This document shows, in pieces, positions 1-27,244 of a DNA stretch of 64,000 nucleotides. Each line of letters opens with the position of its first letter. Position 1 is the stretch's first letter. Both the position numbers and the translations under genes were made by a program. Source of the DNA: Perna viridis. Its lineage: Eukaryota. The notes under the pieces are model-generated. The model did no database searches, was not told the DNA's origin, and saw only the letters and a list, made by a program, of their open reading frames with translations. Where the stretch lies: the NCBI GenBank assembly GCA_037379345.1, contig CM074511.1, positions 59,464,862-59,528,861 of the forward strand, read 5' to 3'.

Positions 1-178
1 AGTGGACAATTTATTAATATAAAAACCGGTATATGTCCATTGAAATCTTTCAGTCATTTACCAATCACACTTGACATTTCCCGATGCCAAATAATTTTCT
101 TGGACAAAGAAGCGCTTGGCTTTAAGCAAGGGAAAATGAAGGATGTCAGCATAACATTGGCAATAATTTAATACTTAC

Positions 179-523
179 TTCCGTCTGTAGAGTTTGAATC
201 ATGCGTGAAGTTAGATTTGTCTGTGAAGTTGGACATGCATTCTACGGCAATATCGACCCCAGCATAACAATAGCTGTTTTCATAATGGGAACACTCGTTG
301 ATATCAACTTCGAACCCGATACAGTTGATACTGAAACCCGATGAATGGTAGTAATAATCCCGTTGACGGCTTGTAGCTATGCCTGTGTTTCCCATTCCCA
401 TATGTTTACATACAACAGTAGCTGTCACGTCGTTCCAATAGTCATCACAAATAGTCGACCAATTGCCAGAGTAAGTATTAAAGAACAAGACTCGACCTCC
501 ATCTCCAATCATAAGATCTATTT
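179..523 (-). CDS. SRCR repeat exon, leftmost copy (variant with 3 amino-acid changes)
   Basis: Same splice sites as the other copies. Encodes GNTG/DYYY/FEVD instead of GNKG/DYNY/FEAD. Confidence 0.9.
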
Positions 524-3500
524 CTGAAAGGAATTACAAATCCAATGAACATCTGGTAAAACAATGAAATGATAAGAGCGTTGCTTTCTTCAATGAGTTG
601 TAGTTATATGAATGTTTGTTATTGTATGTCGATATACATCATTGTTATTTTCAACTATTAACTAGATGTTCAATTGGATGAGTGAGCTACATTGTACTGA
701 TATTGTACTCCAAGAAACGCAATTGCATTTTCAGAAACAAAAATCAAATCATTCAAGAAAGTAGGTCATTTATAGAGATAGAGATATATTAGATCATCCG
801 ACGCACCTTCTTATAAATAAAAGCGAGTTTCTCCTAAAATGTAGAACACAATTAGCTTTGTGTTTGAGTTTTGCGCATTGGAACATTAATATGTGCGAAT
901 GTATTCTTGTCTTTCTCATATGTGGAAGAATTCTAAACAAATCTAATCGGATTGGTCTATGAGTAATGTTTAAGTAAAGGATAGCAATTGAACTGAGATT
1001 TTCCTGAAGCCGACGGAAATCCCGAAACAACGCGCCCAATAATACAATGACGATAAACATCATGTTGCAAAATGAGAAATCGACTTGGCGCCATGACTCC
1101 CAGGTATACATTTTGTCTCTGACTTTCTATGACCAAGTCGATTTCCAAATGAGTCATCTTCGTTACTCAAGTGGACAATTTATTAATATAAAAACCGGTT
1201 TATGTCCATTGAAATCTTTCAGTCATTTACCAATCACACTTGACATTTCCCGATGCCAAATAATTTTCTTGGACAAAGAAGCGCTTGGCTTTAAGCAAGG
1301 GAAAATGAAGGATGTCAGCATAACATTGGCAATAATTTAATACTTACTTCCGTCTGTAGAGTTTGAATCATGCGTGAAGTTAGATTTGTCTGTGAAGTTG
1401 GACATGCATTCTACGGCAATATCGACCCCAGCATAACAATAGCTGTTTTCATAATGGGAACACTCGTTGATATCAGCTTCGAACCCGATACAGTTGATAC
1501 TGAAACCCGATGAATGGTAGTTATAATCCCGTTGACGGCTTGTAGCTATGCCTTTGTTTCCCATTCCCATATGTTTACATACAACAGTAGCTGTCACGTC
1601 GTTCCAATAGTCATCACAAATAGTCGACCAATTGCCAGAGTAAGTATTAAAGAACAAGACTCGACCTCCATCTCCAATCATAAGATCTATTTCTGAAAGG
1701 AATTACAAATCCAATGAACATCTGGTAAAACAATGAAATGATAAGAGCGTTGCTTTCTTCAATGAGTTGTAGTTATATGAATGTTTGTTATTGTATGTCG
1801 ATATACATCATTGTTATTTTCAACTATTAACCAGATGTTCAATTGGATGAGTGAGCTACATTGTACTGATATTGTACTGCAAGAAACACAATGGCATTTT
1901 CAGAAACAAAAATCAAATCATTCAAGAAAGTAGGTCATTTATAGAGATAGAGATATATTAGATCATCCGATGCACCTTATTATAAATAAAAGCGAGTTTC
2001 TCCTAAAATGTAGAACACAATTAGCTTTGTGTTTGAGTTTTGCGCATTGGAACATTAATATGTGCGAATGTATTCTTGTCTTTCTCATATGTGGAAGAAT
2101 TCTAAACAAATCTAATCGGATTGGTCTATGAGTAATGTTTAAGTAAAGGATAGCAATTGAACTGAGATTTTCCTGAAGCCGACGGAAATCCCGAAACAAC
2201 GCGCCCAATAATACAATGACGATAAACATCATGTTGCAAAATGAGAAATCGACTTGGCGCCATGACTCCCAGGTATACATTTTGTCTCTGACTTTCTATG
2301 ACCAAGTCGATTTCCAAATGAGTCATCTTCGTTACTCAAGTGGACAATTTATTAATATAAAAACCGGTTTATGTCCATTGAAATCTTTCAGTCATTTACC
2401 AATCACACTTGACATTTCCCGATGGCAAATAATTTTCTTGGACAAAGAAGCGCTTGGCTTTAAGCAAGGGAAAATGAAGGATGTCAGCATAACATTGGCA
2501 ATAATTTAATACTTACTTCCGTCTGTAGAGTTTGAATCATGCGTGAAGTTAGATTTGTCTGTGAAGTTGGACATGCATTCTACGGCAATATCGACCCCAG
2601 CATAACAATAGCTGTTTTCATAATGGGAACACTCGTTGATATCAGCTTCGAACCCGATACAGTTGATACTGAAACCCGATGAATGGTAGTTATAATCCCG
2701 TTGACGGCTTGTAGCTATGCCTTTGTTTCCCATTCCCATATGTTTACATACAACAGTAGCTGTCACGTCGTTCCAATAGTCATCACAAATAGTCGACCAA
2801 TTGCCAGAGTAAGTATTAAAGAACAAGACTCGACCTCCATCTCCAATCATAAGATCTATTTCTGAAAGGAATTACAAATCCAATGAACATCTGGTAAAAC
2901 AATGAAATGATAAGAGCGTTGCTTTCTTCAATGAGTTGTAGTTATATGAATGTTTGTTATTGTATGTCGATATACATCATTGTTATTTTCAACTATTAAC
3001 CAGATGTTCAATTGGATGAGTGAGCTACATTGTACTGATATTGTACTGCAAGAAACACAATGGCATTTTCAGAAACAAAAATCAAATCATTCAAGAAAGT
3101 AGGTCATTTATAGAGATAGAGATATATTAGATCATCCGATGCACCTTATTATAAATAAAAGCGAGTTTCTCCTAAAATGTAGAACACAATTAGCTTTGTG
3201 TTTGAGTTTTGCGCATTGGAACATTAATATGTGCGAATGTATTCTTGTCTTTCTCATATGTGGAAGAATTCTAAACAAATCTAATCGGATTGGTCTATGA
3301 GTAATGTTTAAGTAAAGGATAGCAATTGAACTGAGATTTTCCTGAAGCCGACGGAAATCCCGAAACAACGCGCCCAATAATACAATGACGATAAACATCA
3401 TGTTGCAAAATGAGAAATCGACTTGGCGCCATGACTCCCAGGTATACATTTTGTCTCTGACTTTCTATGACCAAGTCGATTTCCAAATGAGTCATCTTCG

Positions 3501-6500
3501 TTACTCAAGTGGACAATTTATTAATATAAAAACCGGTTTATGTCCATTGAAATCTTTCAGTCATTTACCAATCACACTTGACATTTCCCGATGGCAAATA
3601 ATTTTCTTGGACAAAGAAGCGCTTGGCTTTAAGCAAGGGAAAATGAAGGATGTCAGCATAACATTGGCAATAATTTAATACTTACTTCCGTCTGTAGAGT
3701 TTGAATCATGCGTGAAGTTAGATTTGTCTGTGAAGTTGGACATGCATTCTACGGCAATATCGACCCCAGCATAACAATAGCTGTTTTCATAATGGGAACA
3801 CTCGTTGATATCAGCTTCGAACCCGATACAGTTGATACTGAAACCCGATGAATGGTAGTTATAATCCCGTTGACGGCTTGTAGCTATGCCTTTGTTTCCC
3901 ATTCCCATATGTTTACATACAACAGTAGCTGTCACGTCGTTCCAATAGTCATCACAAATAGTCGACCAATTGCCAGAGTAAGTATTAAAGAACAAGACTC
4001 GACCTCCATCTCCAATCATAAGATCTATTTCTGAAAGGAATTACAAATCCAATGAACATCTGGTAAAACAATGAAATGATAAGAGCGTTGCTTTCTTCAA
4101 TGAGTTGTAGTTATATGAATGTTTGTTATTGTATGTCGATATACATCATTGTTATTTTCAACTATTAACCAGATGTTCAATTGGATGAGTGAGCTACATT
4201 GTATTGATATTGTACTGCAAGAAACGCAATTGCATTTTCAGAAACAAACATCAAATCATTCAAGAAAGTAGGTCATTTATAGAGATAGAGATATATTAGA
4301 TCATCCGACGCACCTTCTTATAAATAAAAGCGAGTTTCTTCTAAAATGTAGAACACAATTAGCTTTGTGTTTGAGTTTTGCGCATTGGAACATTAATATG
4401 TGCGAATGTATTCTTGTCTTTCTCATATGTGGAAGAATTCTAAACAAATCTAATCGGATTGGACTATGAGTAATGCTTAAGTAAAAGATAGCAATGGAAC
4501 TGAGATTTTTCTGAAGCCGACAGAAATCCCGGAACAACGCGCCCAATAATACAATGACGATAAACATCATGTTGCAAAATGAGAAATCGACTTGGCGCCA
4601 TGACTCCCAGGTATACATTTTGTCTCTGACTTTCTATGACCAAGTCGATTTCCAAATGAGTCATCTTCGTTACTCAAGTGGACAATTTATTTATATAAAA
4701 ACCGGTATATGTCCATTGAAATCTTTCAGTCATTTACCAATCACACTTGACATTTCCCGATGGCAAATAATTTTCTTGGACAAAGAAGCGCTTGGCTTTA
4801 AGCAAGGGAAAATGAAGGATGTCAGCATAACATTGGCAATAATTTAATACTTACTTCCGTCTGTAGAGTTTGAATCATGCGTGAAGTTAGATTTGTCTGT
4901 GAAGTTGGACATGCATTCTACGGCAATATCGACCCCAGCATAACAATAGCTGTTTTCATAATGGGAACACTCGTTGATATCAGCTTCGAACCCGATACAG
5001 TTGATACTGAAACCCGATGAATGGTAGTTATAATCCCGTTGACGGCTTGTAGCTATGCCTTTGTTTCCCATTCCCATATGTTTACATACAACAGTAGCTG
5101 TCACGTCGTTCCAATAGTCATCACAAATAGTCGACCAATTGCCAGAGTAAGTATTAAAGAACAAGACTCGACCTCCATCTCCAATCATAAGATCTATTTC
5201 TGAAAGGAATTACAAATCCAATGAACATCTGGTAAAACAATGAAATGATAAGAGCGTTGCTTTCTTCAATGAGTTGTAGTTATATGAATGTTTGTTATTG
5301 TATGTCGATATACATCATTGTTATTTTCAACTATTAACCAGATGTTCAATTGGATGAGTGAGCTACATTGTACTGATATTGTACTGCAAGAAACACAATG
5401 GCATTTTCAGAAACAAAAATCAAATCATTCAAGAAAGTAGGTCATTTATAGAGATAGAGATATATTAGATCATCCGATGCACCTTATTATAAATAAAAGC
5501 GAGTTTCTCCTAAAATGTAGAACACAATTAGCTTTGTGTTTGAGTTTTGCGCATTGGAACATTAATATGTGCGAATGTATTCTTGTCTTTCTCATATGTG
5601 GAAGAATTCTAAACAAATCTAATCGGATTGGTCTATGAGTAATGTTTAAGTAAAGGATAGCAATTGAACTGAGATTTTCCTGAAGCCGACGGAAATCCCG
5701 AAACAACGCGCCCAATAATACAATGACGATAAACATCATGTTGCAAAATGAGAAATCGACTTGGCGCCATGACTCCCAGGTATACATTTTGTCTCTGACT
5801 TTCTATGACCAAGTCGATTTCCAAATGAGTCATCTTCGTTACTCAAGTGGACAATTTATTAATATAAAAACCGGTTTATGTCCATTGAAATCTTTCAGTC
5901 ATTTACCAATCACACTTGACATTTCCCGATGGCAAATAATTTTCTTGGACAAAGAAGCGCTTGGCTTTAAGCAAGGGAAAATGAAGGATGTCAGCATAAC
6001 ATTGGCAATAATTTAATACTTACTTCCGTCTGTAGAGTTTGAATCATGCGTGAAGTTAGATTTGTCTGTGAAGTTGGACATGCATTCTACGGCAATATCG
6101 ACCCCAGCATAACAATAGCTGTTTTCATAATGGGAACACTCGTTGATATCAGCTTCGAACCCGATACAGTTGATACTGAAACCCGATGAATGGTAGTTAT
6201 AATCCCGTTGACGGCTTGTAGCTATGCCTTTGTTTCCCATTCCCATATGTTTACATACAACAGTAGCTGTCACGTCGTTCCAATAGTCATCACAAATAGT
6301 CGACCAATTGCCAGAGTAAGTATTAAAGAACAAGACTCGACCTCCATCTCCAATCATAAGATCTATTTCTGAAAGGAATTACAAATCCAATGAACATCTG
6401 GTAAAACAATGAAATGATAAGAGCGTTGCTTTCTTCAATGAGTTGTAGTTATATGAATGTTTGTTATTGTATGTCGATATACATCATTGTTATTTTCAAC

Positions 6501-9500
6501 TATTAACCAGATGTTCAATTGGATGAGTGAGCTACATTGTACTGATATTGTACTGCAAGAAACACAATGGCATTTTCAGAAACAAAAATCAAATCATTCA
6601 AGAAAGTAGGTCATTTATAGAGATAGAGATATATTAGATCATCCGATGCACCTTATTATAAATAAAAGCGAGTTTCTCCTAAAATGTAGAACACAATTAG
6701 CTTTGTGTTTGAGTTTTGCGCATTGGAACATTAATATGTGCGAATGTATTCTTGTCTTTCTCATATGTGGAAGAATTCTAAACAAATCTAATCGGATTGG
6801 TCTATGAGTAATGTTTAAGTAAAGGATAGCAATTGAACTGAGATTTTCCTGAAGCCGACGGAAATCCCGAAACAACGCGCCCAATAATACAATGACGATA
6901 AACATCATGTTGCAAAATGAGAAATCGACTTGGCGCCATGACTCCCAGGTATACATTTTGTCTCTGACTTTCTATGACCAAGTCGATTTCCAAATGAGTC
7001 ATCTTCGTTACTCAAGTGGACAATTTATTAATATAAAAACCGGTTTATGTCCATTGAAATCTTTCAGTCATTTACCAATCACACTTGACATTTCCCGATG
7101 GCAAATAATTTTCTTGGACAAAGAAGCGCTTGGCTTTAAGCAAGGGAAAATGAAGGATGTCAGCATAACATTGGCAATAATTTAATACTTACTTCCGTCT
7201 GTAGAGTTTGAATCATGCGTGAAGTTAGATTTGTCTGTGAAGTTGGACATGCATTCTACGGCAATATCGACCCCAGCATAACAATAGCTGTTTTCATAAT
7301 GGGAACACTCGTTGATATCAGCTTCGAACCCGATACAGTTGATACTGAAACCCGATGAATGGTAGTTATAATCCCGTTGACGGCTTGTAGCTATGCCTTT
7401 GTTTCCCATTCCCATATGTTTACATACAACAGTAGCTGTCACGTCGTTCCAATAGTCATCACAAATAGTCGACCAATTGCCAGAGTAAGTATTAAAGAAC
7501 AAGACTCGACCTCCATCTCCAATCATAAGATCTATTTCTGAAAGGAATTACAAATCCAATGAACATCTGGTAAAACAATGAAATGATAAGAGCGTTGCTT
7601 TCTTCAATGAGTTGTAGTTATATGAATGTTTGTTATTGTATGTCGATATACATCATTGTTATTTTCAACTATTAACCAGATGTTCAATTGGATGAGTGAG
7701 CTACATTGTATTGATATTGTACTGCAAGAAACGCAATTGCATTTTCAGAAACAAACATCAAATCATTCAAGAAAGTAGGTCATTTATAGAGATAGAGATA
7801 TATTAGATCATCCGACGCACCTTCTTATAAATAAAAGCGAGTTTCTTCTAAAATGTAGAACACAATTAGCTTTGTGTTTGAGTTTTGCGCATTGGAACAT
7901 TAATATGTGCGAATGTATTCTTGTCTTTCTCATATGTGGAAGAATTCTAAACAAATCTAATCGGATTGGACTATGAGTAATGCTTAAGTAAAAGATAGCA
8001 ATGGAACTGAGATTTTTCTGAAGCCGACAGAAATCCCGGAACAACGCGCCCAATAATACAATGACGATAAACATCATGTTGCAAAATGAGAAATCGACTT
8101 GGCGCCATGACTCCCAGGTATACATTTTGTCTCTGACTTTCTATGACCAAGTCGATTTCCAAATGAGTCATCTTCGTTACTCAAGTGGACAATTTATTTA
8201 TATAAAAACCGGTATATGTCCATTGAAATCTTTCAGTCATTTACCAATCACACTTGACATTTCCCGATGGCAAATAATTTTCTTGGACAAAGAAGCGCTT
8301 GGCTTTAAGCAAGGGAAAATGAAGGATGTCAGCATAACATTGGCAATAATTTAATACTTACTTCCGTCTGTAGAGTTTGAATCATGCGTGAAGTTAGATT
8401 TGTCTGTGAAGTTGGACATGCATTCTACGGCAATATCGACCCCAGCATAACAATAGCTGTTTTCATAATGGGAACACTCGTTGATATCAGCTTCGAACCC
8501 GATACAGTTGATACTGAAACCCGATGAATGGTAGTTATAATCCCGTTGACGGCTTGTAGCTATGCCTTTGTTTCCCATTCCCATATGTTTACATACAACA
8601 GTAGCTGTCACGTCGTTCCAATAGTCATCACAAATAGTCGACCAGTTGCCAGAGTAAGTATTAAAGAACAAGACTCGACCTCCATCTCCAATCATAAGAT
8701 CTATTTCTGAAAGGAATTACAAATCCAATGAACATCTGGTAAAACAATGAAATGATAAGAGCGTTGCTTTCTTCAATGAGTTGTAGTTATATGAATGTTT
8801 GTTATTGTATGTCGATATACATCATTGTTATTTTCAACTATTAACCAGATGTTCAATTGGATGAGTGAGCTACATTGTATTGATATTGTACTGCAAGAAA
8901 CGCAATTGCATTTTCAGAAACAAACATCAAATCATTCAAGAAAGTAGGTCATTTATAGAGATAGAGATATATTAGATCATCCGACGCACCTTCTTATAAA
9001 TAAAAGCGAGTTTCTTCTAAAATGTAGAACACAATTAGCTTTGTGTTTGAGTTTTGCGCATTGGAACATTAATATGTGCGAATGTATTCTTGTCTTTCTC
9101 ATATGTGGAAGAATTCTAAACAAATCTAATCGGATTGGTCTATGAGTAATGTTTAAGTAAAAGATAGCAATTGAACTGAGATTTTCCTGAAGCCGACAGA
9201 AATCCCGAAACAACGCGCCCAATAATACAATGACGATAAACATCATGTTGCAAAATGAGAAATCGACTTGGCGCCATGACTCCCAGGTATACATTTTGTC
9301 TCTGACTTTCTATGACCAAGTCGATTTCCAAATGAGTCATCTTCGTTACTCAAGTGGACAATTTATTAATATAAAAACCGGTTTATGTCCATTGAAATCT
9401 TTCAGTCATTTACCAATCACACTTGACATTTCCCGATGCCAAATAATTTTCTTGGACAAAGAAGCGCTTGGCTTTAAGCAAGGGAAAATGAAGGATGTCA

Positions 9501-12500
9501 GCATAACATTGGCAATAATTTAATACTTACTTCCGTCTGTAGAGTTTGAATCATGCGTGAAGTTAGATTTGTCTGTGAAGTTGGACATGCATTCTACGGC
9601 AATATCGACCCCAGCATAACAATAGCTGTTTTCATAATGGGAACACTCGTTGATATCAGCTTCGAACCCGATACAGTTGATACTGAAACCCGATGAATGG
9701 TAGTTATAATCCCGTTGACGGCTTGTAGCTATGCCTTTGTTTCCCATTCCCATATGTTTACATACAACAGTAGCTGTCACGTCGTTCCAATAGTCATCAC
9801 AAATAGTCGACCAGTTGCCAGAGTAAGTATTAAAGAACAAGACTCGACCTCCATCTCCAATCATAAGATCTATTTCTGAAAGGAATTACAAATCCAATGA
9901 ACATCTGGTAAAACAATGAAATGATAAGAGCGTCGCTTTCTTCAATAAGTTGTAGTTACATGAATGTTTGTTATTGTATGTCGATATACATCATTGTTAT
10001 TTTCAACTATTAACCAGATGTTCAATTGGATGAGTGAGCTACGTTGTACTGATATTGTACTGCAAGAAACGCAATTGCATTTTCAGAAACAAACATCAAA
10101 TCATTCAAGAAAGTAGGTCATTTATAGAGATAGAGATATATTAGATCATCCGACGCACCTTCTTATAAATAAAAGCGAGTTTCTTCTAAAATGTAGAACA
10201 CAATTAGCTTTGTGTTTGAGTTTTGCGCATTGGAACATTAATATGTGCGAATGTATTCTTGTCTTTCTCATATGTGGAAGAATTCTAAACAAATCTAATC
10301 GGATTGGTCTATGAGTAATGTTTAAGTAAAAGATAGCAATTGAACTGAGATTTTCCTGAAGCCGACAGAAATCCCGAAACAACGCGCCCAATAATACAAT
10401 GACGATAAACATCATGTTGCAAAATGAGAAATCGACTTGGCGCCATGACTCCCAGGTATACATTTTGTCTCTGACTTTCTATGACCAAGTCGATTTCCAA
10501 ATGAGTCATCTTCGTTACTCAAGTGGACAATTTATTAATATAAAAACCGGTTTATGTCCATTGAAATCTTTCAGTCATTTACCAATCACACTTGACATTT
10601 CCCGATGCCAAATAATTTTCTTGGACAAAGAAGCGCTTGGCTTTAAGCAAGGGAAAATGAAGGATGTCAGCATAACATTGGCAATAATTTAATACTTACT
10701 TCCGTCTGTAGAGTTTGAATCATGCGTGAAGTTAGATTTGTCTGTGAAGTTGGACATGCATTCTACGGCAATATCGACCCCAGCATAACAATAGCTGTTT
10801 TCATAATGGGAACACTCGTTGATATCAGCTTCGAACCCGATACAGTTGATACTGAAACCCGATGAATGGTAGTTATAATCCCGTTGACGGCTTGTAGCTA
10901 TGCCTTTGTTTCCCATTCCCATATGTTTACATACAACAGTAGCTGTCACGTCGTTCCAATAGTCATCACAAATAGTCGACCAGTTGCCAGAGTAAGTATT
11001 AAAGAACAAGACTCGACCTCCATCTCCAATCATAAGATCTATTTCTGAAAGGAATTACAAATCCAATGAACATCTGGTAAAACAATGAAATGATAAGAGC
11101 GTTGTTTTCTTCAATGAATTGTAGTTATATGAGTCTTTGTTATTGTATGTCGATATACATCATTGTTATTTTCAACTATTAACCAGATGGTCAATTGGAT
11201 GAGTGAGCTACATTGTATTGATATTGTACTGCAAGAAACGCAATTGCATTTTCAGAAACAAACATCAAATCATTCAAGAAAGTAGGTCATTTATAGAGAT
11301 AGAGATATATTAGATCATCCGACGCACCTTCTTATAAATAAAAGCGAGTTTCTTCTAAAATGTAGAACACAATTAGCTTTGTGTTTGAGTTTTGCGCATT
11401 GGAACATTAATATGTGCGAATGTATTCTTGTCTTTCTCATATGTGGAAGAATTCTAAACAAATCTAATCGGATTGGTCTATGAGTAATGTTTAAGTAAAA
11501 GATAGCAATGGAACTGAGATTTTCCTGAAGCCGACAGAAATCCCGAAACAACGCGCCCAATAATACAATGACGATAAACATCATGTTGCAAAATGAGAAA
11601 TCGACTTGGCGCCATGACTCCCAGGTATACATTTTGTCTCTGACTTTCTATGACCAAGTCGATTTCCAAATGAGTCATCTTCGTTACTCAAGTGGACAAT
11701 TTATTAATATAAAAACCGGTTTATGTCCATTGAAATCTTTCAGTCATTTACCAATCACACTTGACATTTCCCGATGCCAAATAATTTTCTTGGACAAAGA
11801 AGCGCTTGGCTTTAAGCAAGGGAAAATGAAGGATGTCAGCATAACATTGGCAATAATTTAATACTTACTTCCGTCTGTAGAGTTTGAATCATGCGTGAAG
11901 TTAGATTTGTCTGTGAAGTTGGACATGCATTCTACGGCAATATCGACCCCAGCATAACAATAGCTGTTTTCATAATGGGAACACTCGTTGATATCAGCTT
12001 CGAACCCGATACAGTTGATACTGAAACCCGATGAATGGTAGTTATAATCCCGTTGACGGCTTGTAGCTATGCCTTTGTTTCCCATTCCCATATGTTTACA
12101 TACAACAGTAGCTGTCACGTCGTTCCAATAGTCATCACAAATAGTCGACCAGTTGCCAGAGTAAGTATTAAAGAACAAGACTCGACCTCCATCTCCAATC
12201 ATAAGATCTATTTCTGAAAGGAATTACAAATCCAATGAACATCTGGTAAAACAATGAAATGATAAGAGCGTTGCTTTCTTCAATGAGTTGTAGTTATATG
12301 AATGTTTGTTATTGTATGTCGATATACATCATTGTTATTTTCAACTATTAACCAGATGTTCAATTGGATGAGTGAGCTACATTGTACTGATATTGTACTG
12401 CAAGAAAAGCAATTGCATTTTCAGAAACAAAAATCAAATCATTCAAGAAAGTAGGTCATTTATAGAGATAGAGATATATTAGATCATCCGACGCACCTTC

Positions 12501-15500: not shown

Positions 15501-18500
15501 TCAGCTTCGAACCCGATACAGTTGATACTGAAACCCGATGAATGGTAGTTATAATCCCGTTGACGGCTTGTAGCTATGCCTTTGTTTCCCATTCCCATAT
15601 GTTTACATACAACAGTAGCTGTCACGTCGTTCCAATAGTCATCACAAATAGTCGACCAGTTGCCAGAGTAAGTATTAAAGAACAAGACTCGACCTCCATC
15701 TCCAATCATAAGATCTATTTCTGAAAGGAATTACAAATCCAATGAACATCTGGTAAAACAATGAAATGATAAGAGCGTTGTTTTCTTCAATGAATTGTAG
15801 TTATATGAGTCTTTGTTATTGTATGTCGATATACATCATTGTTATTTTCAACTATTAACCAGATGGTCAATTGGATGAGTGAGCTACATTGTATTGATAT
15901 TGTACTGCAAGAAACGCAATTGCATTTTCAGAAACAAACATCAAATCATTCAAGAAAGTAGGTCATTTATAGAGATAGAGATATATTAGATCATCCGACG
16001 CACCTTCTTATAAATAAAAGCGAGTTTCTTCTAAAATGTAGAACACAATTAGCTTTGTGTTTGAGTTTTGCGTATTGGAACATTAATATGTGCGAATGTA
16101 TTCTTGTCTTTCTCATATGTGGAAGAATTCTAAACAAATCTAATCGGATTGGTCTATGAGTAATGTTTAAGTAAAAGATAGCAATTGAACTGAGATTTTC
16201 CTGAAGCCGACAGAAATCCCGAAACAACGCGCCCAATAATACAATGACGATAAACATCATGTTGCAAAATGAGAAATCGACTTGGCGCCATGACTCCCAG
16301 GTATACATTTTGTCTCTGACTTTCTATGACCAAGTCGATTTCCAAATGAGTCATCTTCGTTACTCAAGTGGACAATTTATTAATATAAAAACCGGTTTAT
16401 GTCCATTGAAATCTTTCAGTCATTTACCAATCACACTTGACATTTCCCGATGCCAAATAATTTTCTTGGACAAAGAAGCGCTTGGCTTTAAGCAAGGGAA
16501 AATGAAGGATGTCAGCATAACATTGGCAATAATTTAATACTTACTTCCGTCTGTAGAGTTTGAATCATGCGTGAAGTTAGATTTGTCTGTGAAGTTGGAC
16601 ATGCATTCTACGGCAATATCGACCCCAGCATAACAATAGCTGTTTTCATAATGGGAACACTCGTTGATATCAGCTTCGAACCCGATACAGTTGATACTGA
16701 AACCCGATGAATGGTAGTTATAATCCCGTTGACGGCTTGTAGCTATGCCTTTGTTGCCCATTCCCATATGTTTACATACAACAGTAGCTGTCACGTCGTT
16801 CCAATAGTCATCACAAATAGTCGACCAGTTGCCAGAGTAGGTATTAAAGAACAAGACTCGACCTCCATCTCCAATCATAAGATCTATTTCTGAAAGGAAT
16901 TACAAATCCAATGAACATCTGGTAAAACAATGAAATGATAAGAGCGTTGCTTTCTTCAATGAGTTGTAGTTATATGAATGTTTGTTATTGTATGTCGATA
17001 TACATCATTGTTATTTTCAACTATTGACCAGATGTTCAATTGGATGAGTGAGCTACATTGTATTGATATTGTACTGCAAGAAAAGCAATTGCATTTTCAG
17101 AAACAAAATTCAAATCATTCAAGAAAGTAGGTCATTTATAGAGATAGAGATATATTAGATCATCCGACGCACCTTCTTATAAATAAAAGCGAGTTTCTTC
17201 TAAAATGTAGAACACAATTAGCTTTGTGTTTGAGTTTTGCGCATTGGAACATTAATATGTGCGAATGTATTCTTGTCTTTCTCATATGTGGAAGAATTCT
17301 AAACAAATCTAATCAGATTGGTCTATGAGTAATGTTTAAGTAAAAGATAGCAATTGAACTGAGATTTTCCTGAAGCCGACAGAAATCCCGAAACAACGCG
17401 CCCAATAATACAATGACGATAAACATCATGTTGCAAAATGAGAAATCGAGTTGGCGCCATGACTCCCAGGTATACATTTTGTCTCTGACTTTCTATGACC
17501 AAGTCGATTTCCAAATGAGTCATCTTCGTTACTCAAGTGGACAATTTATTAATATAAAAACCGGTTTATGTCCATTGAAATCTTTCAGTCATTTACCAAT
17601 CACACTTGACATTTCCCGATGCCAAATAATTTTCTTGGACAAAGAAGCGCTTGGCTTTAAGCAAGGGAAAATGAAGGATGTCAGCATAACATTGGCAATA
17701 ATTTAATACTTACTTCCGTCTGTAGAGTTTGAATCATGCGTGAAGTTAGATTTGTCTGTGAAGTTGGACATGCATTCTACGGCAATATCGACCCCAGCAT
17801 AACAATAGCTGTTTTCATAATGGGAACACTCGTTGATATCAGCTTCGAACCCGATACAGTTGATACTGAAACCCGATGAATGGTAGTTATAATCCCGTTG
17901 ACGGCTTGTAGCTATGCCTTTGTTTCCCATTCCCATATGTTTACATACAACAGTAGCTGTCACGTCGTTCCAATAGTCATCACAAATAGTCGACCAGTTG
18001 CCAGAGTAAGTATTAAAGAACAAGACTCGACCTCCATCTCCAATCATAAGATCTATTTCTGAAAGGAATTACAAATCCAATGAACATCTGGTAAAACAAT
18101 GAAATGATAAGAGCGTTGTTTTCGTCAATGAATTGTAGTTATATGAGTCTTTGTTATTGTATGTCGATATACATCATTGTTATTTTCAACTATTAACCAG
18201 ATGGTCAATTGGATGAGTGAGCTACATTGTATTGATATTGTACTGCAAGAAACGCAATTGCATTTTCAGAAACAAACATCAAATCATTCAAGAAAGTAGG
18301 TCATTTATAGAGATAGAGATATATTAGATCATCCGACGCACCTTCTTATAAATAAAAGCGAGTTTCTTCTAAAATGTAGAACACAATTAGCTTTGTGTTT
18401 GAGTTTTGCGTATTGGAACATTAATATGTGCGAATGTATTCTTGTCTTTCTCATATGTGGAAGAATTCTAAACAAATCTAATCGGATTGGTCTATGAGTA

Positions 18501-21500
18501 ATGTTTAAGTAAAAGATAGCAATTGAACTGAGATTTTCCTGAAGCCGACAGAAATCCCGAAACAACGCGCCCAATAATACAATGACGATAAACATCATGT
18601 TGCAAAATGAGAAATCGACTTGGCGCCATGACTCCCAGGTATACATTTTGTCTCTGACTTTCTATGACCAAGTCGATTTCCAAATGAGTCATCTTCGTTA
18701 CTCAAGTGGACAATTTATTAATATAAAAACCGGTTTATGTCCATTGAAATCTTTCAGTCATTTACCAATCACACTTGACATTTCCCGATGCCAAATAATT
18801 TTCTTGGACAAAGAAGCGCTTGGCTTTAAGCAAGGGAAAATGAAGGATGTCAGCATAACATTGGCAATAATTTAATACTTACTTCCGTCTGTAGAGTTTG
18901 AATCATGCGTGAAGTTAGATTTGTCTGTGAAGTTGGACATGCATTCTACGGCAATATCGACCCCAGCATAACAATAGCTGTTTTCATAATGGGAACACTC
19001 GTTGATATCAGCTTCGAACCCGATACAGTTGATACTGAAACCCGATGAATGGTAGTTATAATCCCGTTGACGGCTTGTAGCTATGCCTTTGTTTCCCATT
19101 CCCATATGTTTACATACAACAGTAGCTGTCACGTCGTTCCAATAGTCATCACAAATAGTCGACCAGTTGCCAGAGTAAGTATTAAAGAACAAGACTCGAC
19201 CTCCATCTCCAATCATAAGATCTATTTCTGAAAGGAATTACAAATCCAATGAACATCTGGTAAAACAATGAAATGATAAGAGCGTTGCTTTCTTCAATGA
19301 GTTGTAGTTATATGAATGTTTGTTATTGTATGTCGATATACATCATTGTTATTTTCAACTATTAACCAGATGTTCAATTGGATGAGTGAGCTACATTGTA
19401 CTGATATTGTACTGCAAGAAAAGCAATTGCATTTTCAGAAACAAACATCAAATCATTCAAGAAAGTAGGTCATTTATAGAGATAGAGATATATTAGATCA
19501 TCCGACGCACCTTCTTATAAATAAAAGCGAGTTTCTTCTAAAATGTAGAACACAATTAGCTTTGTGTTTGAGTTTTGCGCATTGGAACATTAATATGTGC
19601 GAATGTATTCTTGTCTTTCTCATATGTGGAAGAATTCTAAACAAATCTAATCGGATTGGTCTATGAGTAATGTTTAAGTAAAAGATAGCAATTGAACTGA
19701 GATTTTCCTGAAGCCGACAGAAATCCCGAAACAACGCGCCCAATAATACAATGACGATAAACATCATGTTGCAAAATGAGAAATCGACTTGGCGCCATGA
19801 CTCCCAGGTATACATTTTGTCTCTGACTTTCTATGACCAAGTCGATTTCCAAATGAGTCATCTTCGTTACTCAAGTGGACAATTTATTAATATAAAAACC
19901 GGTTTATGTCCATTGAAATCTTTCAGTCATTTACCAATCACACTTGACATTTCCCGATGCCAAATAATTTTCTTGGACAAAGAAGCGCTTGGCTTTAAGC
20001 AAGGGAAAATGAAGGATGTCAGCATAACATTGGCAATAATTTAATACTTACTTCCGTCTGTAGAGTTTGAATCATGCGTGAAGTTAGATTTGTCTGTGAA
20101 GTTGGACATGCATTCTACGGCAATATCGACCCCAGCATAACAATAGCTGTTTTCATAATGGGAACACTCGTTGATATCAGCTTCGAACCCGATACAGTTG
20201 ATACTGAAACCCGATGAATGGTAGTTATAATCCCGTTGACGGCTTGTAGCTATGCCTTTGTTTCCCATTCCCATATGTTTACATACAACAGTAGCTGTCA
20301 CGTCGTTCCAATAGTCATCACAAATAGTCGACCAGTTGCCAGAGTAAGTATTAAAGAACAAGACTCGACCTCCATCTCCAATCATAAGATCTATTTCTGA
20401 AAGGAATTACAAATCCAATGAACATCTGGTAAAACAATGAAATGATAAGAGCGTTGCTTTCTTCAATGAGTTGTAGTTATATGAATGTTTGTTATTGTAT
20501 GTCGATATACATCATTGTTATTTTCAACTATTAACCAGATGTTCAATTGGATGAGTGAGCTACATTGTACTGATATTGTACTGCAAGAAAAGCAATTGCA
20601 TTTTCAGAAACAAACATCAAATCATTCAAGAAAGTAGGTCATTTATAGAGATAGAGATATATTAGATCATCCGACGCACCTTCTTATAAATAAAAGCGAG
20701 TTTCTTCTAAAATGTAGAACACAATTAGCTTTGTGTTTGAGTTTTGCGCATTGGAACATTAATATGTGCGAATGTATTCTTGTCTTTCTCATATGTGGAA
20801 GAATTCTAAACAAATCTAATCGGATTGGTCTATGAGTAATGTTTAAGTAAAAGATAGCAATTGAACTGAGATTTTCCTGAAGCCGACAGAAATCCCGAAA
20901 CAACGCGCCCAATAATACAATGACGATAAACATCATGTTGCAAAATGAGAAATCGACTTGGCGCCATGACTCCCAGGTATACATTTTGTCTCTGACTTTC
21001 TATGACCAAGTCGATTTCCATATGAGTCATCTTCGTTACTCAAGTGGACAATTTATTAATATAAAAACCGGTTTATGTCCATTGAAATCTTTCAGTCATT
21101 TACCAATCACACTTGACATTTCCCGATGCCAAATAATTTTCTTGGACAAAGAAGCGCTTGGCTTTAAGCAAGGGAAAATGAAGGATGTCAGCATAACATT
21201 GGCAATAATTTAATACTTACTTCCGTCTGTAGAGTTTGAATCATGCGTGAAGTTAGATTTGTCTGTGAAGTTGGACATGCATTCTACGGCAATATCGACC
21301 CCAGCATAACAATAGCTGTTTTCATAATGGGAACACTCGTTGATATCAGCTTCGAACCCGATACAGTTGATACTGAAACCCGATGAATGGTAGTTATAAT
21401 CCCGTTGACGGCTTGTAGCTATGCCTTTGTTTCCCATTCCCATATGTTTACATACAACAGTAGCTGTCACGTCGTTCCAATAGTCATCACAAATAGTCGA

Positions 21501-24500
21501 CCAGTTGCCAGAGTAAGTATTAAAGAACAAGACTCGACCTCCATCTCCAATCATAAGATCTATTTCTGAAAGGAATTACAAATCCAATGAACATCTGGTA
21601 AAACAATGAAATGATAAGAGCGTTGCTTTCTTCAATGAGTTGTAGTTATATGAATGTTTGTTATTGTATGTCGATATACATCATTGTTATTTTCAACTAT
21701 TAACCAGATGTTCAATTGGATGAGTGAGCTACATTGTACTGATATTGTACTGCAAGAAAAGCAATTGCATTTTCAGAAACAAACATCAAATCATTCAAGA
21801 AAGTAGGTCATTTATAGAGATAGAGATATATTAGATCATCCGACGCACCTTCTTATAAATAAAAGCGAGTTTCTTCTAAAATGTAGAACACAATTAGCTT
21901 TGTGTTTGAGTTTTGCGCATTGGAACATTAATATGTGCGAATGTATTCTTGTCTTTCTCATATGTGGAAGAATTCTAAACAAATCTAATCGGATTGGTCT
22001 ATGAGTAATGTTTAAGTAAAAGATAGCAATTGAACTGAGATTTTCCTGAAGCCGACAGAAATCCCGAAACAACGCGCCCAATAATACAATGACGATAAAC
22101 ATCATGTTGCAAAATGAGAAATCGACTTGGCGCCATGACTCCCAGGTATACATTTTGTCTCTGACTTTCTATGACCAAGTCGATTTCCATATGAGTCATC
22201 TTCGTTACTCAAGTGGACAATTTATTAATATAAAAACCGGTTTATGTCCATTGAAATCTTTCAGTCATTTACCAATCACACTTGACATTTCCCGATGCCA
22301 AATAATTTTCTTGGACAAAGAAGCGCTTGGCTTTAAGCAAGGGAAAATGAAGGATGTCAGCATAACATTGGCAATAATTTAATACTTACTTCCGTCTGTA
22401 GAGTTTGAATCATGCGTGAAGTTAGATTTGTCTGTGAAGTTGGACATGCATTCTACGGCAATATCGACCCCAGCATAACAATAGCTGTTTTCATAATGGG
22501 AACACTCGTTGATATCAGCTTCGAACCCGATACAGTTGATACTGAAACCCGATGAATGGTAGTTATAATCCCGTTGACGGCTTGTAGCTATGCCTTTGTT
22601 TCCCATTCCCATATGTTTACATACAACAGTAGCTGTCACGTCGTTCCAATAGTCATCACAAATAGTCGACCAGTTGCCAGAGTAAGTATTAAAGAACAAG
22701 ACTCGACCTCCATCTCCAATCATAAGATCTATTTCTGAAAGGAATTACAAATCCAATGAACATCTGGTAAAACAATGAAATGATAAGAGCGTTGCTTTCT
22801 TCAATGAGTTGTAGTTATATGAATGTTTGTTATTGTATGTCGATATACATCATTGTTATTTTCAACTATTAACCAGATGTTCAATTGGATGAGTGAGCTA
22901 CATTGTACTGATATTGTACTGCAAGAAAAGCAATTGCATTTTCAGAAACAAAAATCAAATCATTCAAGAAAGTAGGTCATTTATAGAGATAGAGATATAT
23001 TAGATCATCCAACGTACCTTCTTATAAATAAAAGCGAGTTTCTTCTAAAATGTAGAACACAATTAGCTTTGTGTTTGAGTTTTGCGCATTGGAACATTAA
23101 TATGTGCGAATGTATTCTTGTCTTTCTCATATGTGGAAGAATTCTAAACAAATCTAATCGGATTGGTCTATGAGTAATGTTTAAGTAAAAGATAGCAATT
23201 GAACTGAGATTTTCCTGAAGCCGACAGAAATCCCGAAACAACGCGCCCAATAATACAATGACGATAAACATCATGTTGCAAAATGAGAAATCGACTTGGC
23301 GCCATGACTCCCAGGTATACATTTTGTCTCTGACTTTCTATGACCAAGTCGATTTCCAAATGAGTCATCTTCGTTACTCAAGTGGACAATTTATTAATAT
23401 AAAAACCGGTTTATGTCCATTGAAATCTTTCAGTCATTTACCAATCACACTTGACATTTCCCGATGCCAAATAATTTTCTTGGACAAAGAAGCGCTTGGC
23501 TTTAAGCAAAGGAAAATGAAGGATGTCAGCATAACATTGGCAATAATTTGATACTTACTTCCGTCTGTAGAGTTTGAATCATGCGTGAAGTTAGATTTGT
23601 CTGTGAAGTTGGACATGCATTCTACGGCAATATCGACCCCAGCATAACAATAGCTGTTTTCATAATGGGAACACTCGTTGATATCAGCTTCGAACCCGAT
23701 ACAGTTGATACTGAAACCCGATGAATGGTAGTTATAATCCCGTTGACGGCTTGTAGCTATGCCTTTGTTTCCCATTCCCATATGTTTACATACAACAGTA
23801 GCTGTCACGTCGTTCCAATAGTCATCACAAATAGTCGACCAGTTGCCAGAGTAAGTATTAAAGAACAAGACTCGACCTCCATCTCCAATCATAAGATCTA
23901 TTTCTGAAAGGAATTACAAATCAATTGAACATCAGATATAACAATGGAATGATAGTGGTGTAACTTTTTCCAATCTTCAGGGTTATGTTGCTACAAGATT
24001 GAAGTCATCACTACAGAAGTTTTATGGTCGTCAACATGAACTCGTGGATCGTTATGGTGTATCCATCTGCACCATGAAAACTGATTTATTCAACGGGTCA
24101 TAGTTTTCCTTTCCTCGTTTGTCTACCCGGCCTTGACTTTTTATGAGCAACTTGGCGGGTGTTTCTAGAAAAGCAGAGAACGCTTACCCTGCTGGTGCAC
24201 CTGGTTCATGCTCCCAGTTTTTACTGGAGTCCGAGTTGCTCATTTGCTTTTGTTACTTTATGTTCTTTGTTGTGTATGTCTGTTTTCCATGTCTGGTCTT
24301 TGTACCTGGATTACATTCTTTTGATTACCCTATAACCTTGGTTCCCTTGATTAATCTTTCTATCTCCAATCCTTAGTTTGATTACTTTATTTCGATTTTT
24401 AAAGTGCCTATGTTTTCAATTGTTTTTGTTTTAATTTTAGATAGGCGGTGTTCTGGCCTTTTTTTTAACAAAATTTAAGTTGTTGACATGAAACTTACTT

Positions 24501-25053
24501 GGAAATATTTTTGACTGAACATTTGAACCTAAACTTGATACATTATGATTGACATTTTGAATTAAAAAATTGATTGTATGTTTGAACATCTTTTACATGG
24601 TAGTGTGTACACATTTTGTTATGTAATTTGATTAACGAAAATCTGAAAGATACTTTCTTAGGTTCATTTTTTTAATTGGGATACGAAGAAACAGGTACTT
24701 TAGGATATTATTGTTTTAGTATTAAGTGTGCATACTTGTATTATTGCTGTCTCTACCATTGTTTTGGAAACACTCCGCAACAGCGTCTCTGATGTAAAAA
24801 CACGAAGATTCATAGTATGAACACTCGTTTATGTTGGCTTCAGTCCCATAACAACTTATTGAAACTTCTTTTGAACTGTATGTATAATCTCTGGATGCAG
24901 TACTTGCAATTCCTTTATCCCCCATTCCGGTATGTCTACACAAGACCGTCGCAGACTGGTCATTCCACCCATCATCACATATTGTTGACCAATTACCAGA
25001 AATGTCATCAACTATGAGAACTCGTCCATCTGGTGCGATGTTTGCCACTAGCC
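179..25053 (-). CDS. Multi-SRCR (DMBT1-like) scavenger receptor cysteine-rich protein, partial (3' end outside window), >=22 SRCR exons
   Basis: Repeated exons: 179-523, 1348-1692, 2517-2861, 3686-4030, 4855-5199, 6024-6368, 7193-7537, 8362-8706, 9531-9875, 10700-11044, 11869-12213, 13038-13382, 14207-14551, 15376-15720, 16545-16889, 17714-18058, 18883-19227, 20052-20396, 21221-21565, 22390-22734, 23559-23903, plus a divergent exon at 24736-25053. Acceptor tcctttcag|AAATAGAT, donor GACGGAA|gtaagt. Each exon is 345 nt (115 codons), phase 1-1. SRCR motifs: GRV...W.TICDD.W....A.VVC...G, C.G.E..I.EC, C...D.AVEC. Confidence 0.93.
23559..23903 (-). CDS. SRCR repeat exon, most 5' copy of the homogeneous array
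   Basis: Splice sites and protein are identical to the other copies. The longer 152-aa ORF arises only from an intronic TAA>CAA change after the donor. Confidence 0.9.
23978..24360 (+). mobile_element. 5'-truncated Penelope-like retroelement (RT C-terminus + 3' UTR), copy 1
   Basis: Encodes QGYVATRLKSSLQKFYGRQHELVDRYGVSICTM and is highly similar to 27245-27668 and 39866-40075, with the same 3' end (cttgatta[a/c]tctt). Possible TSD tccaatc on both flanks. Confidence 0.75.
24736..25053 (-). CDS. Divergent first SRCR exon of the same gene
   Basis: LVANIAPDGRVLIVDDISGNWSTICDDGWNDQSATVLCRHTGMGDKGIA...SCYGTEANINECSYYESSCFYIRDAVAECFQNNGRDSNNT. Donor ACAA|gtatgc is phase 1. Acceptor is taag|GG (25053) or ctag|TG (25047), both phase 1. 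Confidence 0.88.
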
Positions 25054-27244
25054 CTTAACGATATAAATACTCATCTTGAATCTTTGACTACTTTTTTTTA
25101 AGTAAGATATATAGGTATGATTCATTAAGGTTTGAATTTGTTTTAAATATAAATGAATCAAAACAAAACAAGCTGCTCAAATAACTACAGAACTAAAAAC
25201 ATTTAAGATGCTGTCTAGTAAAAAACAGCAAAATTCTATAATTTGAAAGGTACAACATAATTTTTCCCACAGTTTCTTGTTCACATTTTATATTTATGTC
25301 AATAGTATAAAGATTTTAATCGACTGTGAATGGCTCCGAAAAGTTCTCTAACAAAGCAACCAAACTTTGAACAAAATGTAGCTTTATCTCCATTTTTTTA
25401 AAATGCTTTCTTTTAATAAATGTATCTTTAATCGCTGCCGTTAATGAAAAACTAACATTTTGCTTTGGGAAATAATGTATTTGTAATATGAAATATTTTT
25501 TTTTATGAGAAACAAAATTTGTCTTGTGCTACCCACTGTTTGGTTTTTGCATGGACACTGTCTTTATGTTGTGAAAAATTACTTTAAAAAGAAATAGAAC
25601 TATGAAGCCTAATCCAACACGGTGAAATTTTATTTTCCCATGAAACTGGTTCAAATAGTGCTTACGGGAGAATACCCCTTGAAATGCATGTATACCATAC
25701 CGCAATTTGTTCTTGTATTTAGAAATGGTGTTCCAAATTATATTTCTGATTGAAGTATTTCTAACTAGTCTATGGGAGTGGAAAAAATTAATGAAAAAAC
25801 ACTTTCATATTTTTGTTCAAAAGCAAATCTTAAGACAAAAGCAATGTTGAAGTTTTATTAGACTCAACCTTTGTACTTAAATTAACTTGTATAGCTCTTT
25901 TGAATCGTCAAAGAAGTAATTAATTTTAAAAATGTCTTTGTACTTTGCTTTGATTTAGTCTTTTGTTTATTTTAATTATGTTACACTGCAAAAAAATCAA
26001 AACTTTGGTCAACACAAAATACTGTCATATGTTATTTTCTTTTACATCGGTTGTATCTTGCACGCAAATAGGGTATTTCAAGACATTTAAAAGCAATAAG
26101 TAATTTTTAAACATTGTTAACTGACCAGGTCATCCGAATCTATAAGGAATTCAAGTTTTATAATTCAAAATACTACTGAAACACAATTATCGACAAGAAG
26201 ACGTTAATTTCTTTTTTTTTGATAGTTTGAGGTTCTTTTTGTTTTGGTCACTTTTATTGAAATTATGTTTGCCTGTCCTTAAACAGTCTGAGACAGACCC
26301 GAAAATTTCCTCGCTAGTGTCGTGAAGGTAACGTTTAGAATGACATCCCGCTGTCTTGATTCTAGATGAAATAAATTGCAGAGGATAATTGCAATCACAA
26401 ATCCCATAACATAGTATATATCATTTTGAGTTATAAAATCACGAAAACTCAAATTATGGAATGCACCTTAATTAACTGTGTATAAAATGTCAGTAATAGT
26501 ATAATTTTAATGTAAAATTAGTAAAAAGATGTGTCCCATTTTTCTAAATCCTGAACAAAAATATAACCAATTTGGTGAACTTACATCTTTACAAATAAAA
26601 TATCATATTATATTTTTAAACATTACCAATAACTGACTTGGAGGTGGATTTACGTCATAAATAATTAAAACCCAGGGAAAAAAGTAGTCCGCTATTTTAA
26701 ATGTATATCAAGGTTTTTTACTCTTTTGTTCACTGACTTTGGTCAACAACATGAATAAAGTTAACAATATTGTGTTTTGAATAAGTTTTGAATATCTTCT
26801 CTTCATTTTTATAAAATTTTTAAGAAGAAAAAAAGGTACATAAACATAAAGAAACATCAAAATACATGTCCGAAACGTGAAAAAAAATTAAAAACAGGAG
26901 TGAACGGTATGCATTTCCTGCCTGCCTACAACACTCGTGACATTGCAAGTGAGTAAAATCCCATAAGAATCTAGATACAATAAAATAACTCCCCGATACA
27001 AATTGTTAATGCGGATCCACAAAGAGAAGGGAGCAACCCGTGGTGCGTTTCATCCTTTGGTAATATCAGTTAATTTAACAATATAAATGAAATGAATGAA
27101 AATTATCCCGCAAAAGTGTCCATTAAAAAGTTCATTTTTCAAAAATAATATTTAGGTCAATTGCTTATTTTAACTATCATACTGGCGCCAACTAGTACTA
27201 ATACGACCAGCGAATTGATAAGACATTTGCAACAGCAACTCTGC

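Follow-up and report, generated by a model that had tools for sequence, protein, structure and literature searches.

In the human LPA gene, kringle IV-2 is encoded by a kilobase exon-plus-intron unit that lies in near-identical, in-frame tandem copies, so that copy number sets the length of the protein and the module itself stays unchanged. LPA is a secreted plasma protein, with two exons per unit, a kringle domain and a documented copy-number polymorphism. Here we describe an in-frame exon-plus-intron array that is like LPA in layout and differs from it in encoding an unrelated domain, SRCR, and in a copy-number variation that is only hinted at. It lies in a stretch of 64,000 nucleotides of Perna viridis (assembly GCA_037379345.1, 723 Mb in 46 contigs; contig CM074511.1, positions 59,464,862 to 59,528,861, or G000:C1:59464862-59528861 in our numbering), called the window below. 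The array belongs to an expressed minus-strand gene that probably encodes a very large cell-surface glycoprotein with 22 near-identical SRCR domains.

Among SRCR proteins, DMBT1 (SALSA, gp340) carries nearly identical internal SRCR repeats whose copy number varies in humans (PMC4851238, PMC9038570). It is a secreted mucosal agglutinin (PMC3100851, PMC7043408) that has been proposed to bind repetitive ligands multivalently; its ligand site is a dual cation site formed by D1019/D1020/E1086 and D1020/D1058/D1059/N1081, in which mutating the first two abolishes binding (PMC7043408). The gene described here resembles DMBT1 in its tandem SRCR domains from repeated exons and in its Ser/Thr-rich glycosylated segments. 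However, the domains of DMBT1 belong to group B, with eight cysteines, its SID segments are encoded by exons of their own, and the secreted protein also contains CUB and ZP domains, whereas the present gene has six cysteines per domain, a linker within the SRCR exon, no CUB or ZP domain, a 505-residue mucin stalk and a hydrophobic C-terminus. CD163 and WC1 likewise display several SRCR domains in a row at the cell surface, but their eight-cysteine domains differ from one another, a mucin stalk is absent, and the proteins cross the membrane by a true transmembrane helix that leads into a signalling tail. The multi-SRCR genes of sea urchins hold one SRCR domain per exon and have grown by domain-level tandem duplication; the genes and domains described there are paralogues that have diverged, and none forms an array of 99% identity within one gene (PMC10855680).

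A closed array of 22 SRCR exons

Autocorrelation and boundary scans showed that a 1169-bp tandem unit spans the window from position 1 to ~23956. Self-identity at a lag of 1169 was 0.97-1.00 in 500-bp bins from position 1 to ~22790, compared with 0.25-0.31 elsewhere, and an anchor 30-mer was found 21 times in the window, always at a spacing of exactly 1169 bp, indicating that there are no indels within the array. Autocorrelation was used since Tandem Repeats Finder, whose longest period is 500, made no call of the array. These results confirm an original prediction, made from the window alone, that a 1169-bp unit is repeated 21 times in it. The same prediction had left the array open-ended, with at least 21 units reaching position 25053, and here it had to be corrected on both sides. 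In the 100 kb examined to the left of the window only one further unit was found, and the periodicity ends at about window position -1313 (L004 ~8690), so that the array is closed, with ~21.6 periods, 22 complete exons and 25.7 kb in all. On the other side the periodic array ends at ~23956, and 25053 marks the acceptor of another SRCR exon, which is diverged and does not belong to the periodic part. The intron of the last unit stops at unit position ~667 and then joins a relic of the unit. A protein search of the same genome returned no strong match of the unit outside this locus, and thus no haplotig duplicate. The array and its relic are as follows:

1..23956, minus strand: tandem array, in-window part (20.5 of ~21.6 units), from autocorrelation, boundary scans and an independent DNA contig that 'goes back 1169'
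window -1395 to -1288 (L004:8605-8712), minus strand: array relic at the 3' array edge, comprising the last ~110 bp of an SRCR exon, a donor (GTTAGA) and the start of the intron, 81% identical to the unit

At a TTGTT microhomology the relic passes directly into sequence from the middle of the last unit's intron. None of three RNA-like runs has a contig on the relic.

The open frame of the array is on the minus strand. Each of the 21 in-window exons is 345 bp long, the first at 23903-23559 and the others following every 1169 bp down to 523-179, and each is preceded by ...TTTCAG, followed by GTAAGT and of phase 1-1. The symmetric exons with intact splice sites that had been predicted were therefore found in all 21 (AG/GTAAGT). 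The exons are numbered in gene order:

23559..23903, minus strand: SRCR exon unit 0, first in gene order (345 bp, AG/GTAAGT, phase 1-1)
22390..22734, minus strand: SRCR exon unit 1
21221..21565, minus strand: SRCR exon unit 2
20052..20396, minus strand: SRCR exon unit 3
18883..19227, minus strand: SRCR exon unit 4
17714..18058, minus strand: SRCR exon unit 5, the query unit for searches
16545..16889, minus strand: SRCR exon unit 6, with two synonymous variants
15376..15720, minus strand: SRCR exon unit 7
14207..14551, minus strand: SRCR exon unit 8, with one synonymous variant
13038..13382, minus strand: SRCR exon unit 9
11869..12213, minus strand: SRCR exon unit 10
10700..11044, minus strand: SRCR exon unit 11
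9531..9875, minus strand: SRCR exon unit 12
8362..8706, minus strand: SRCR exon unit 13
7193..7537, minus strand: SRCR exon unit 14, the whole unit identical to units 15, 17 and 18
6024..6368, minus strand: SRCR exon unit 15
4855..5199, minus strand: SRCR exon unit 16, the unit differing from unit 13 at one site
3686..4030, minus strand: SRCR exon unit 17
2517..2861, minus strand: SRCR exon unit 18
1348..1692, minus strand: SRCR exon unit 19
179..523, minus strand: SRCR exon unit 20, variant domain (K>T, N>Y, A>V), with RNA contigs in runs X15 and X16

Translation is identical in 20 of the 21 in-window exons, as had been claimed, and in the 22nd exon to the left of the window; the variant exon 523-179 carries three substitutions. 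The exon product has 115 residues, namely a six-cysteine SRCR domain and an 18-residue linker, with four N-glycosylation sequons, three of them in the linker (88 in the whole predicted protein). Together with the 106 residues of the diverged exon, the 21 exons encode 2521 residues within the window (21 x 115 + 106), in agreement with the ~2500 originally estimated. More specifically, the Pfam search that had been proposed as a check matched the unit to SRCR PF00530 (E=1.7e-13, 51.2 bits, cut-off 26.1), and sequence matches in the PDB were to CD163, CD5L, CD6, M2BP, DMBT1 and MARCO, the best solved structure being CD163 (E=2.6e-27 summed over domains) and the DMBT1 SRCR chain reaching E=3e-7.

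All six core cysteines are present, since Cys 25, 38, 67, 77, 85 and 95 of the unit align with those of canonical domains. The eight cysteines of group B are not, there being no Cys at the 'C.GRVE' or 'LGCG' positions where the canonical hits P0004, P0006 and P0007 have one; at the same time, one 345-bp exon encodes each domain, as in group B. SRCR group A domains have six cysteines and are split across two exons, so that the unit shares with them the cysteine number, yet not the exon structure. The domain fits neither classical group cleanly. In its kilobase head-to-tail unit, its in-frame exons and its transcription, the array has the layout of a coding macrosatellite.

The gene is transcribed and spliced exon-precisely

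A query stretch with an exonic share of 0.685 was used to search sequencing runs, all of them in the form of Logan contigs, for which contig depth is a poor measure. DNA-like runs share 0.75-0.97 of the query words, and ten runs from five studies, eight of them guessed to be RNA, share 0.67-0.70. The RNA-like runs X11, X15 and X16, from three studies, and the independent DNA run X3 were compared on L014, from whose positions window positions are obtained by subtracting 5440. In the RNA-like runs, contigs lie on the SRCR exon (L014 4450-4794), on a mucin exon (2080-3595) and on a further exon (1010 to 1 and beyond), and no contig lies on introns in X11, X15 or X16. Two joints with GT..AG on the minus strand, one linking the end of the SRCR exon with the start of the mucin exon (3595->5619) and one linking the mucin exon with the last exon (1010->2080), occur in all three of these runs, and neither occurs in X3. 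The gene is thus expressed and spliced exon-precisely; contigs restricted to exons and two joints in three studies support the prediction of a single, very large SRCR protein encoded by the spliced transcript of the array.

The RNA contig of the SRCR exon has 351 letters, that is 345 plus two on the 5' side and four on the 3' side. A k=31 graph gives exactly this length if the exon can be preceded either by another SRCR exon or by the diverged exon, with 'AA' common to both, and followed either by another SRCR exon or by the mucin exon, with 'AAAT' common to both, a geometry that points, indirectly, to SRCR-to-SRCR splicing. Relative to single-copy exons, the depth of the SRCR exon contig is 15-18 in X11, 11-13 in X15 and 6-11 in X16, which fits many SRCR copies per messenger RNA, although contig depth is a poor measure. 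X15 and X16 also have contigs on the variant exon 523-179, at approximately single-copy depth. An exact scan of metagenome contigs for the exon-exon junction found none; these collections are not mollusc RNA and are uninformative on this point.

Exons upstream and downstream of the array

The two exons placed upstream of the array are the following:

24736..25053, minus strand: diverged first SRCR exon, 318 bp, phase 1-1, AG acceptor at 25055-25054, GTATGC donor, PF00530 at 50.5 bits
29404..29461, minus strand: candidate first coding exon with a predicted 19-residue signal peptide MIFLYLLLAAGICVCNGQG, donor GAG|GTATGT, phase 1

The diverged exon is 56% identical to the array unit. The putative signal-peptide exon came from a scan of the upstream minus strand for an ATG followed by a hydrophobic core and a phase-1 donor, in which 29461-29404 was the single outstanding candidate, with an in-frame stop three codons upstream. 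No other candidate with scores equal to or above its rounded scores was found elsewhere in the window or on its plus strand. A control scan of 2 x 164 kb at these rounded scores, a cut-off that excluded exon 29461-29404 itself, gave one match, a stronger one, ~80 kb away on the minus strand. This match is a signal-peptide-like first exon, MDLLKNFCCILLVLFLDYPFSLGQ, with a consensus donor of phase 1 at L012 ~9902 (minus strand; window ~-80098), with which another minus-strand gene presumably begins. In the nearest relatives with complete N-termini, the signal peptide is followed directly by the first SRCR domain. Searching the library with the diverged first exon for a spliced, RNA-derived open reading frame (ORF) recovered only the unspliced ORF of the window itself (P0149), and the 5' exon is therefore a prediction only.

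Downstream of the array, an ORF of 505 codons opens at the acceptor TTTTAG|AAATG... in phase 1. It corresponds to the mucin exon, 1515 bp long at L014 2080-3595 and of phase 1-1, whose product consists of 45% Ser+Thr (52% with Pro), with no cysteine and no N-glycosylation sequon, and contains ~7 copies of a 93-bp (31-residue) repeat. It has no Pfam match; a long Ser/Thr/Pro-rich repeat region that lacks cysteines is nonetheless what defines a mucin-like (PTS) domain. An intron of 1069 bp separates it from the last coding exon, which encodes G-ADVRQFYSSYVMIFMVIINVLVHMRP and then a stop, and RNA contigs cover at least 0.9 kb past the stop codon, presumably the 3' untranslated region. The 26-residue C-terminus reads ...SWSGGADVRQ, FYSSYVMIFMVIINVLV, HMRP, stop, with a hydrophobic stretch of 13-18 residues. 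In this tail the small residues SGGAD are followed by a short polar spacer and then by the hydrophobic stretch at the end, and by eye a glycosylphosphatidylinositol (GPI) signal fits. From its sequence, the C-terminus may thus be a GPI-attachment signal or else a membrane anchor with a tail of 3-4 residues. Of the C-terminal domains for which a search had been suggested, the membrane segment may have a counterpart in this hydrophobic tail, but CUB and ZP are absent, the mucin exon and the 26-residue tail standing in their place.

Summed over all exons, the model has 9561 nt, or 3187 codons, with 23 SRCR domains (one diverged and 22 near-identical) on a mucin stalk, and the messenger RNA would be ~10.6 kb or longer. 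The parts would follow in the order signal peptide (putative), diverged SRCR domain, 22 near-identical SRCR domains with their linkers, 505-residue stalk and 26-residue C-terminus.

A likely surface glycoprotein for multivalent binding

On present evidence it is likely that this is a real, expressed minus-strand gene for a cell-surface glycoprotein of ~3187 residues, whose 22 near-identical SRCR domains serve multivalent binding. The protein would form a long, heavily glycosylated string of identical binding modules held above the cell surface, and could bind repetitive ligands, such as microbial surfaces or other cells, multivalently. Because every exon is of phase 1-1, any copy number stays in frame, so that domain number, reach and valency could change without a change in specificity. 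The tuning of receptor length and avidity that had been proposed is a conjecture on the present data.

The cation site of DMBT1 was mapped onto the unit via the canonical hit P0007, where the spacing +38, +39, +61 and +66 matches the numbering in PMC7043408. The unit keeps two of the six residues, the DD pair, and at the positions of D1058, D1059, N1081 and E1086 it reads F, S, Y and V. As most of the site is missing, the binding chemistry probably differs from the calcium-bridged mode of DMBT1. With no CUB or ZP domain and a mostly missing cation site, the gene appears as an analogue of DMBT1 in design and not as a member of its family; the earlier description of the locus as a counterpart of DMBT1 is weakened by these points, as well as by the mucin stalk and the hydrophobic tail.

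Several points speak against the interpretation as a multivalent surface protein. Its support comes from sequence and RNA contigs. With two of six cation-site residues kept, DMBT1-style binding of polyanionic microbial ligands is not simply transferable. The signal-peptide exon 29461-29404 is a prediction, and the two readings of the C-terminus fit equally. No SRCR-to-SRCR joint is among the best 15 of 108 joints, all of them from contigs. Finally, the figure of 22 units is that of the assembly, and the only independent DNA gives a depth ratio of 9.2.

The same gene model could also serve another role, which we hold to be rather unlikely as the main one: the protein might be a shed or secreted component of mucus, adhesive or matrix, released from a lipid anchor or by cleavage, with a lubricating, particle-trapping or structural function. 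The long O-glycosylated mucin part, the 88 N-sequons and an essentially missing cytoplasmic tail would suit such a role, as would the mostly missing canonical SRCR ligand site, and DMBT1 itself is a secreted mucosal agglutinin (PMC3100851, PMC7043408). However, the hydrophobic segment at the C-terminus speaks for attachment to a membrane, at least at first, and the SRCR module is under strong purifying selection (see below). Receptor and mucus or matrix component are not mutually exclusive roles, and the present data fit either alike.

Independent DNA supports the repeat and hints at a possibly variable length

In the DNA run X3, a contig of 1199 letters that 'goes back 1169' represents the tandem junction as a circular unit (1169 + 30). 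At all 14 positions where this unit contig differs from the reference, the assembled units vary too (chance 4.8% per site), and four of the 14 differences are the minority haplotype of units 4, 6, 8 and 10. The junction and the matching variant sites show that the repeat and its variants are real. The depth of the unit contig (L014:4258-5426) is 543 compared with ~59 in the flanks, a ratio of 9.2, although contig depth is not a copy number. X3 has no contig on the variant exon 523-179, and contigs cannot show absence. Taken together, this ratio and the missing variant-exon contig may reflect polymorphism of array length or content between individuals.

A ratio of 9.2 rather than 22 could also mean that the repeat is real and its assembled length (22 units, 25.7 kb) inflated or mis-tiled, with far fewer SRCR exons in the genome, all the more as the assessment was made from contigs. 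We find such an assembly artefact improbable. The ordered pattern of 56 variant sites in 17 haplotypes allows long reads to be tiled, the variant sites are seen again in X3, and the depth of consensus k-mer contigs underestimates copies when units differ. Moreover, X3 is a different sample, so that 9 compared with 22 may be true polymorphism, RNA depth ratios reach 15-18, and comparable arrays are present in the assemblies of two other bivalves as well as at a further locus of this genome.

Purifying selection and unequal exchange within the array

Variation was computed among 21 complete units; the ordered pattern of the 22 units comprises 56 variable sites and 17 haplotypes. Variable sites are rarer in exons (7/345) than in introns (49/824; Fisher p=0.004), and nucleotide diversity (pi) is about four-fold lower (0.0030 compared with 0.0127), so that introns, which had been described as nearly as homogeneous as exons, are so only roughly. 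Within exons, pi is 0.0106 at synonymous sites (piS) and 0.0010 at nonsynonymous sites (piN), a piN/piS of 0.09, and piS is approximately equal to intron pi. Four of the exon variants are synonymous and three nonsynonymous, against 1.4 and 5.6 expected (p=0.033). This synonymous excess shows that the repeated SRCR domain is under purifying selection on its protein sequence.

These figures bear on whether the locus encodes a functional protein at all. Very young repeats can look conserved for want of divergence time, and a young array might be transcribed with no protein function, as a decaying or non-translated locus. Such a case is very unlikely here: the frame is open in all 22 exons, their splice sites are intact and indels are absent, piN/piS is 0.09 with piS close to intron pi, and correct downstream splicing and a proper stop codon are seen in three studies. 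Tandem exon-plus-intron units are typical of some host genes for small nucleolar RNAs or microRNAs, but an array of that kind, with a small RNA in the intron and incidental exons, is even less credible here. An Rfam scan of two units gave nothing at E<=1, shuffled sequences fold as well as the intron does (z=-0.63), the introns carry no RNA contig, and the exons are coding and constrained.

With ~1% divergence between units and no indels the units are young, which agrees with the proposal that the array was recently expanded or homogenised. There is no difference among units 14, 15, 17 and 18, and a single site separates unit 13 from unit 16, so that the three-unit block 13-14-15 recurs as 16-17-18. 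One haplotype is common to units 4, 6, 8 and 10, which alternate with units 7 and 9; these two are similar to units 1-3. Divergence is greater in the first unit than in its neighbours, and it is greatest in the last complete unit. Unequal exchange that recurs in registers of one, two and three units, and that leaves the edges of the array unhomogenised, would be expected to give such a pattern. The recurring two- and three-unit blocks fit the unequal crossing-over that had been suggested, and the array would have grown, and would stay uniform, by recent exchange of this kind.

Related arrays in bivalves

The unit was searched against a library of 1.84 billion cluster representatives built from 15 billion proteins, giving 2800 matches. 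No match exceeded 45% identity to the unit, apart from an ORF of 108 residues that is identical to the diverged-exon ORF of the window (56%). The best matches are uncharacterised or 'DMBT1-like' bivalve predictions (Saccostrea echinata, Mytilus californianus, M. coruscus, Ylistrum balloti), and the bivalve relatives are 33-49% identical to the unit, the nearest being M. coruscus CAC5399526 at 49%. The six-cysteine SRCR subtype is shared by M. coruscus CAC5399526, M. californianus XP_052106030, Saccostrea echinata XP_061182410 and Ylistrum balloti XP_060078165. In alignment with canonical eight-cysteine domains and with CD163, this bivalve subtype lacks C1 and C4, has a three-residue gap at the 'LDD' loop and carries a conserved PRDYxY motif.

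Two of these relatives are themselves highly repetitive. The Saccostrea echinata protein has 4054 residues and 40 SRCR stretches, with a self-identity of 1.00 at 204 residues, and that of Ylistrum balloti reaches 0.99 at 218 residues. Both genes are exon-plus-intron arrays of ~100% identical units, 1485 bp long in the oyster (L016, Saccostrea echinata, GCA_033153115.1) and 1637 bp in the scallop (L015, Ylistrum balloti, GCA_031769215.1), with two SRCR domains per unit compared with one here. In L015 the upstream neighbour model is also an SRCR protein, and the repeat runs past the edge of the locus. The repeats of M. coruscus CAC5399526 are diverged (self-identity 0.46), indicating that the homogeneity seen in P. 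viridis is lineage-specific. In this M. coruscus protein the signal peptide is followed directly by SRCR domains, as in the predicted gene here, whereas none of the bivalve relatives inspected, whose models may be partial, has the mucin stalk and tail.

A second array lies on the same chromosome at C1:44159355-44185320 (plus strand), and comprises no fewer than 38 near-identical SRCR exons at a spacing of about 604-607 bp, which lie within higher-order repeats of 4001 and 5213 bp. Its unit is of the same six-cysteine subtype, is 33% identical to the present unit, and is 65% identical to M. coruscus CAC5399086/CAC5399084. Since the present units are at most 49% identical to any other protein and the oyster and scallop arrays are each internally ~100% identical, the independent origin proposed relative to vertebrate DMBT1 holds, and extends to the other bivalve arrays. 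A limited literature search returned no account of near-identical SRCR exon arrays in bivalves, which is no proof of absence.

Neighbouring sequence

An interspersed repeat occurs in the introns of this gene, at window positions 24143-24376, 27161-27674 and 39900-40112 (+), at L004:5654-6151 (+) and at L014:1001-1600. Its recurring ORF reads MSNLAGVSRKAE.AYP...; ...LEQGYVATRLKSSLQ.F.GRH..L.DR.GVSICTMKTDLF and has no Pfam match. Hundreds of copies with 68-77% identity are found genome-wide, and its contig depth is 10^4-10^6 in every run.

Two further regions of the window hold open frames that probably belong to other genes. At 60629-62731 (plus strand), together with 56429-56839 (plus strand), there is an open frame of 700 residues with a weak match to CABIT PF12736 (22.8 bits, cut-off 24); a signalling-adaptor gene next to the array gene, on the opposite strand, probably has one of its large exons here. 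The region 48841-53387 (plus strand) contains Pro/Gln-rich open frames with strong negative GC skew and, at their end, a small cysteine-rich C-terminus, CRDFDNRCKEW...CRLTCMRCKK, which is ShK-like by eye and has no Pfam match; it is likely another gene for a secreted low-complexity protein.

Implications

If the gene is what we take it to be, the receptor design of DMBT1 and LPA, in which an amplified in-frame exon-plus-intron unit gives a length that recombination can alter, has arisen again in molluscs. The design itself was already known; what differs here is the SRCR subtype and an architecture with a mucin stalk and a probable membrane anchor.

At least two unrelated arrays in this genome, and others in oyster and scallop, raise a wider possibility, which we put forward tentatively. 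Bivalves may carry a class of hyper-homogenised SRCR exon macrosatellites, expanded separately, that form surface receptors whose domain number differs between individuals, a copy-number diversification that might serve immunity, symbiont handling or self/non-self recognition. As no protein at least 50% identical is among the best matches, the fragment of the window's own ORF aside, short-read assemblies and annotations would collapse or miss a gene of this kind. As similar arrays occur elsewhere in this genome and in further bivalves, surveys of invertebrate immune genes may be strongly affected in their numbers of SRCR 'genes' and 'domains'. Individual variation in array length, if true, would be a source of immune or adhesive diversity.

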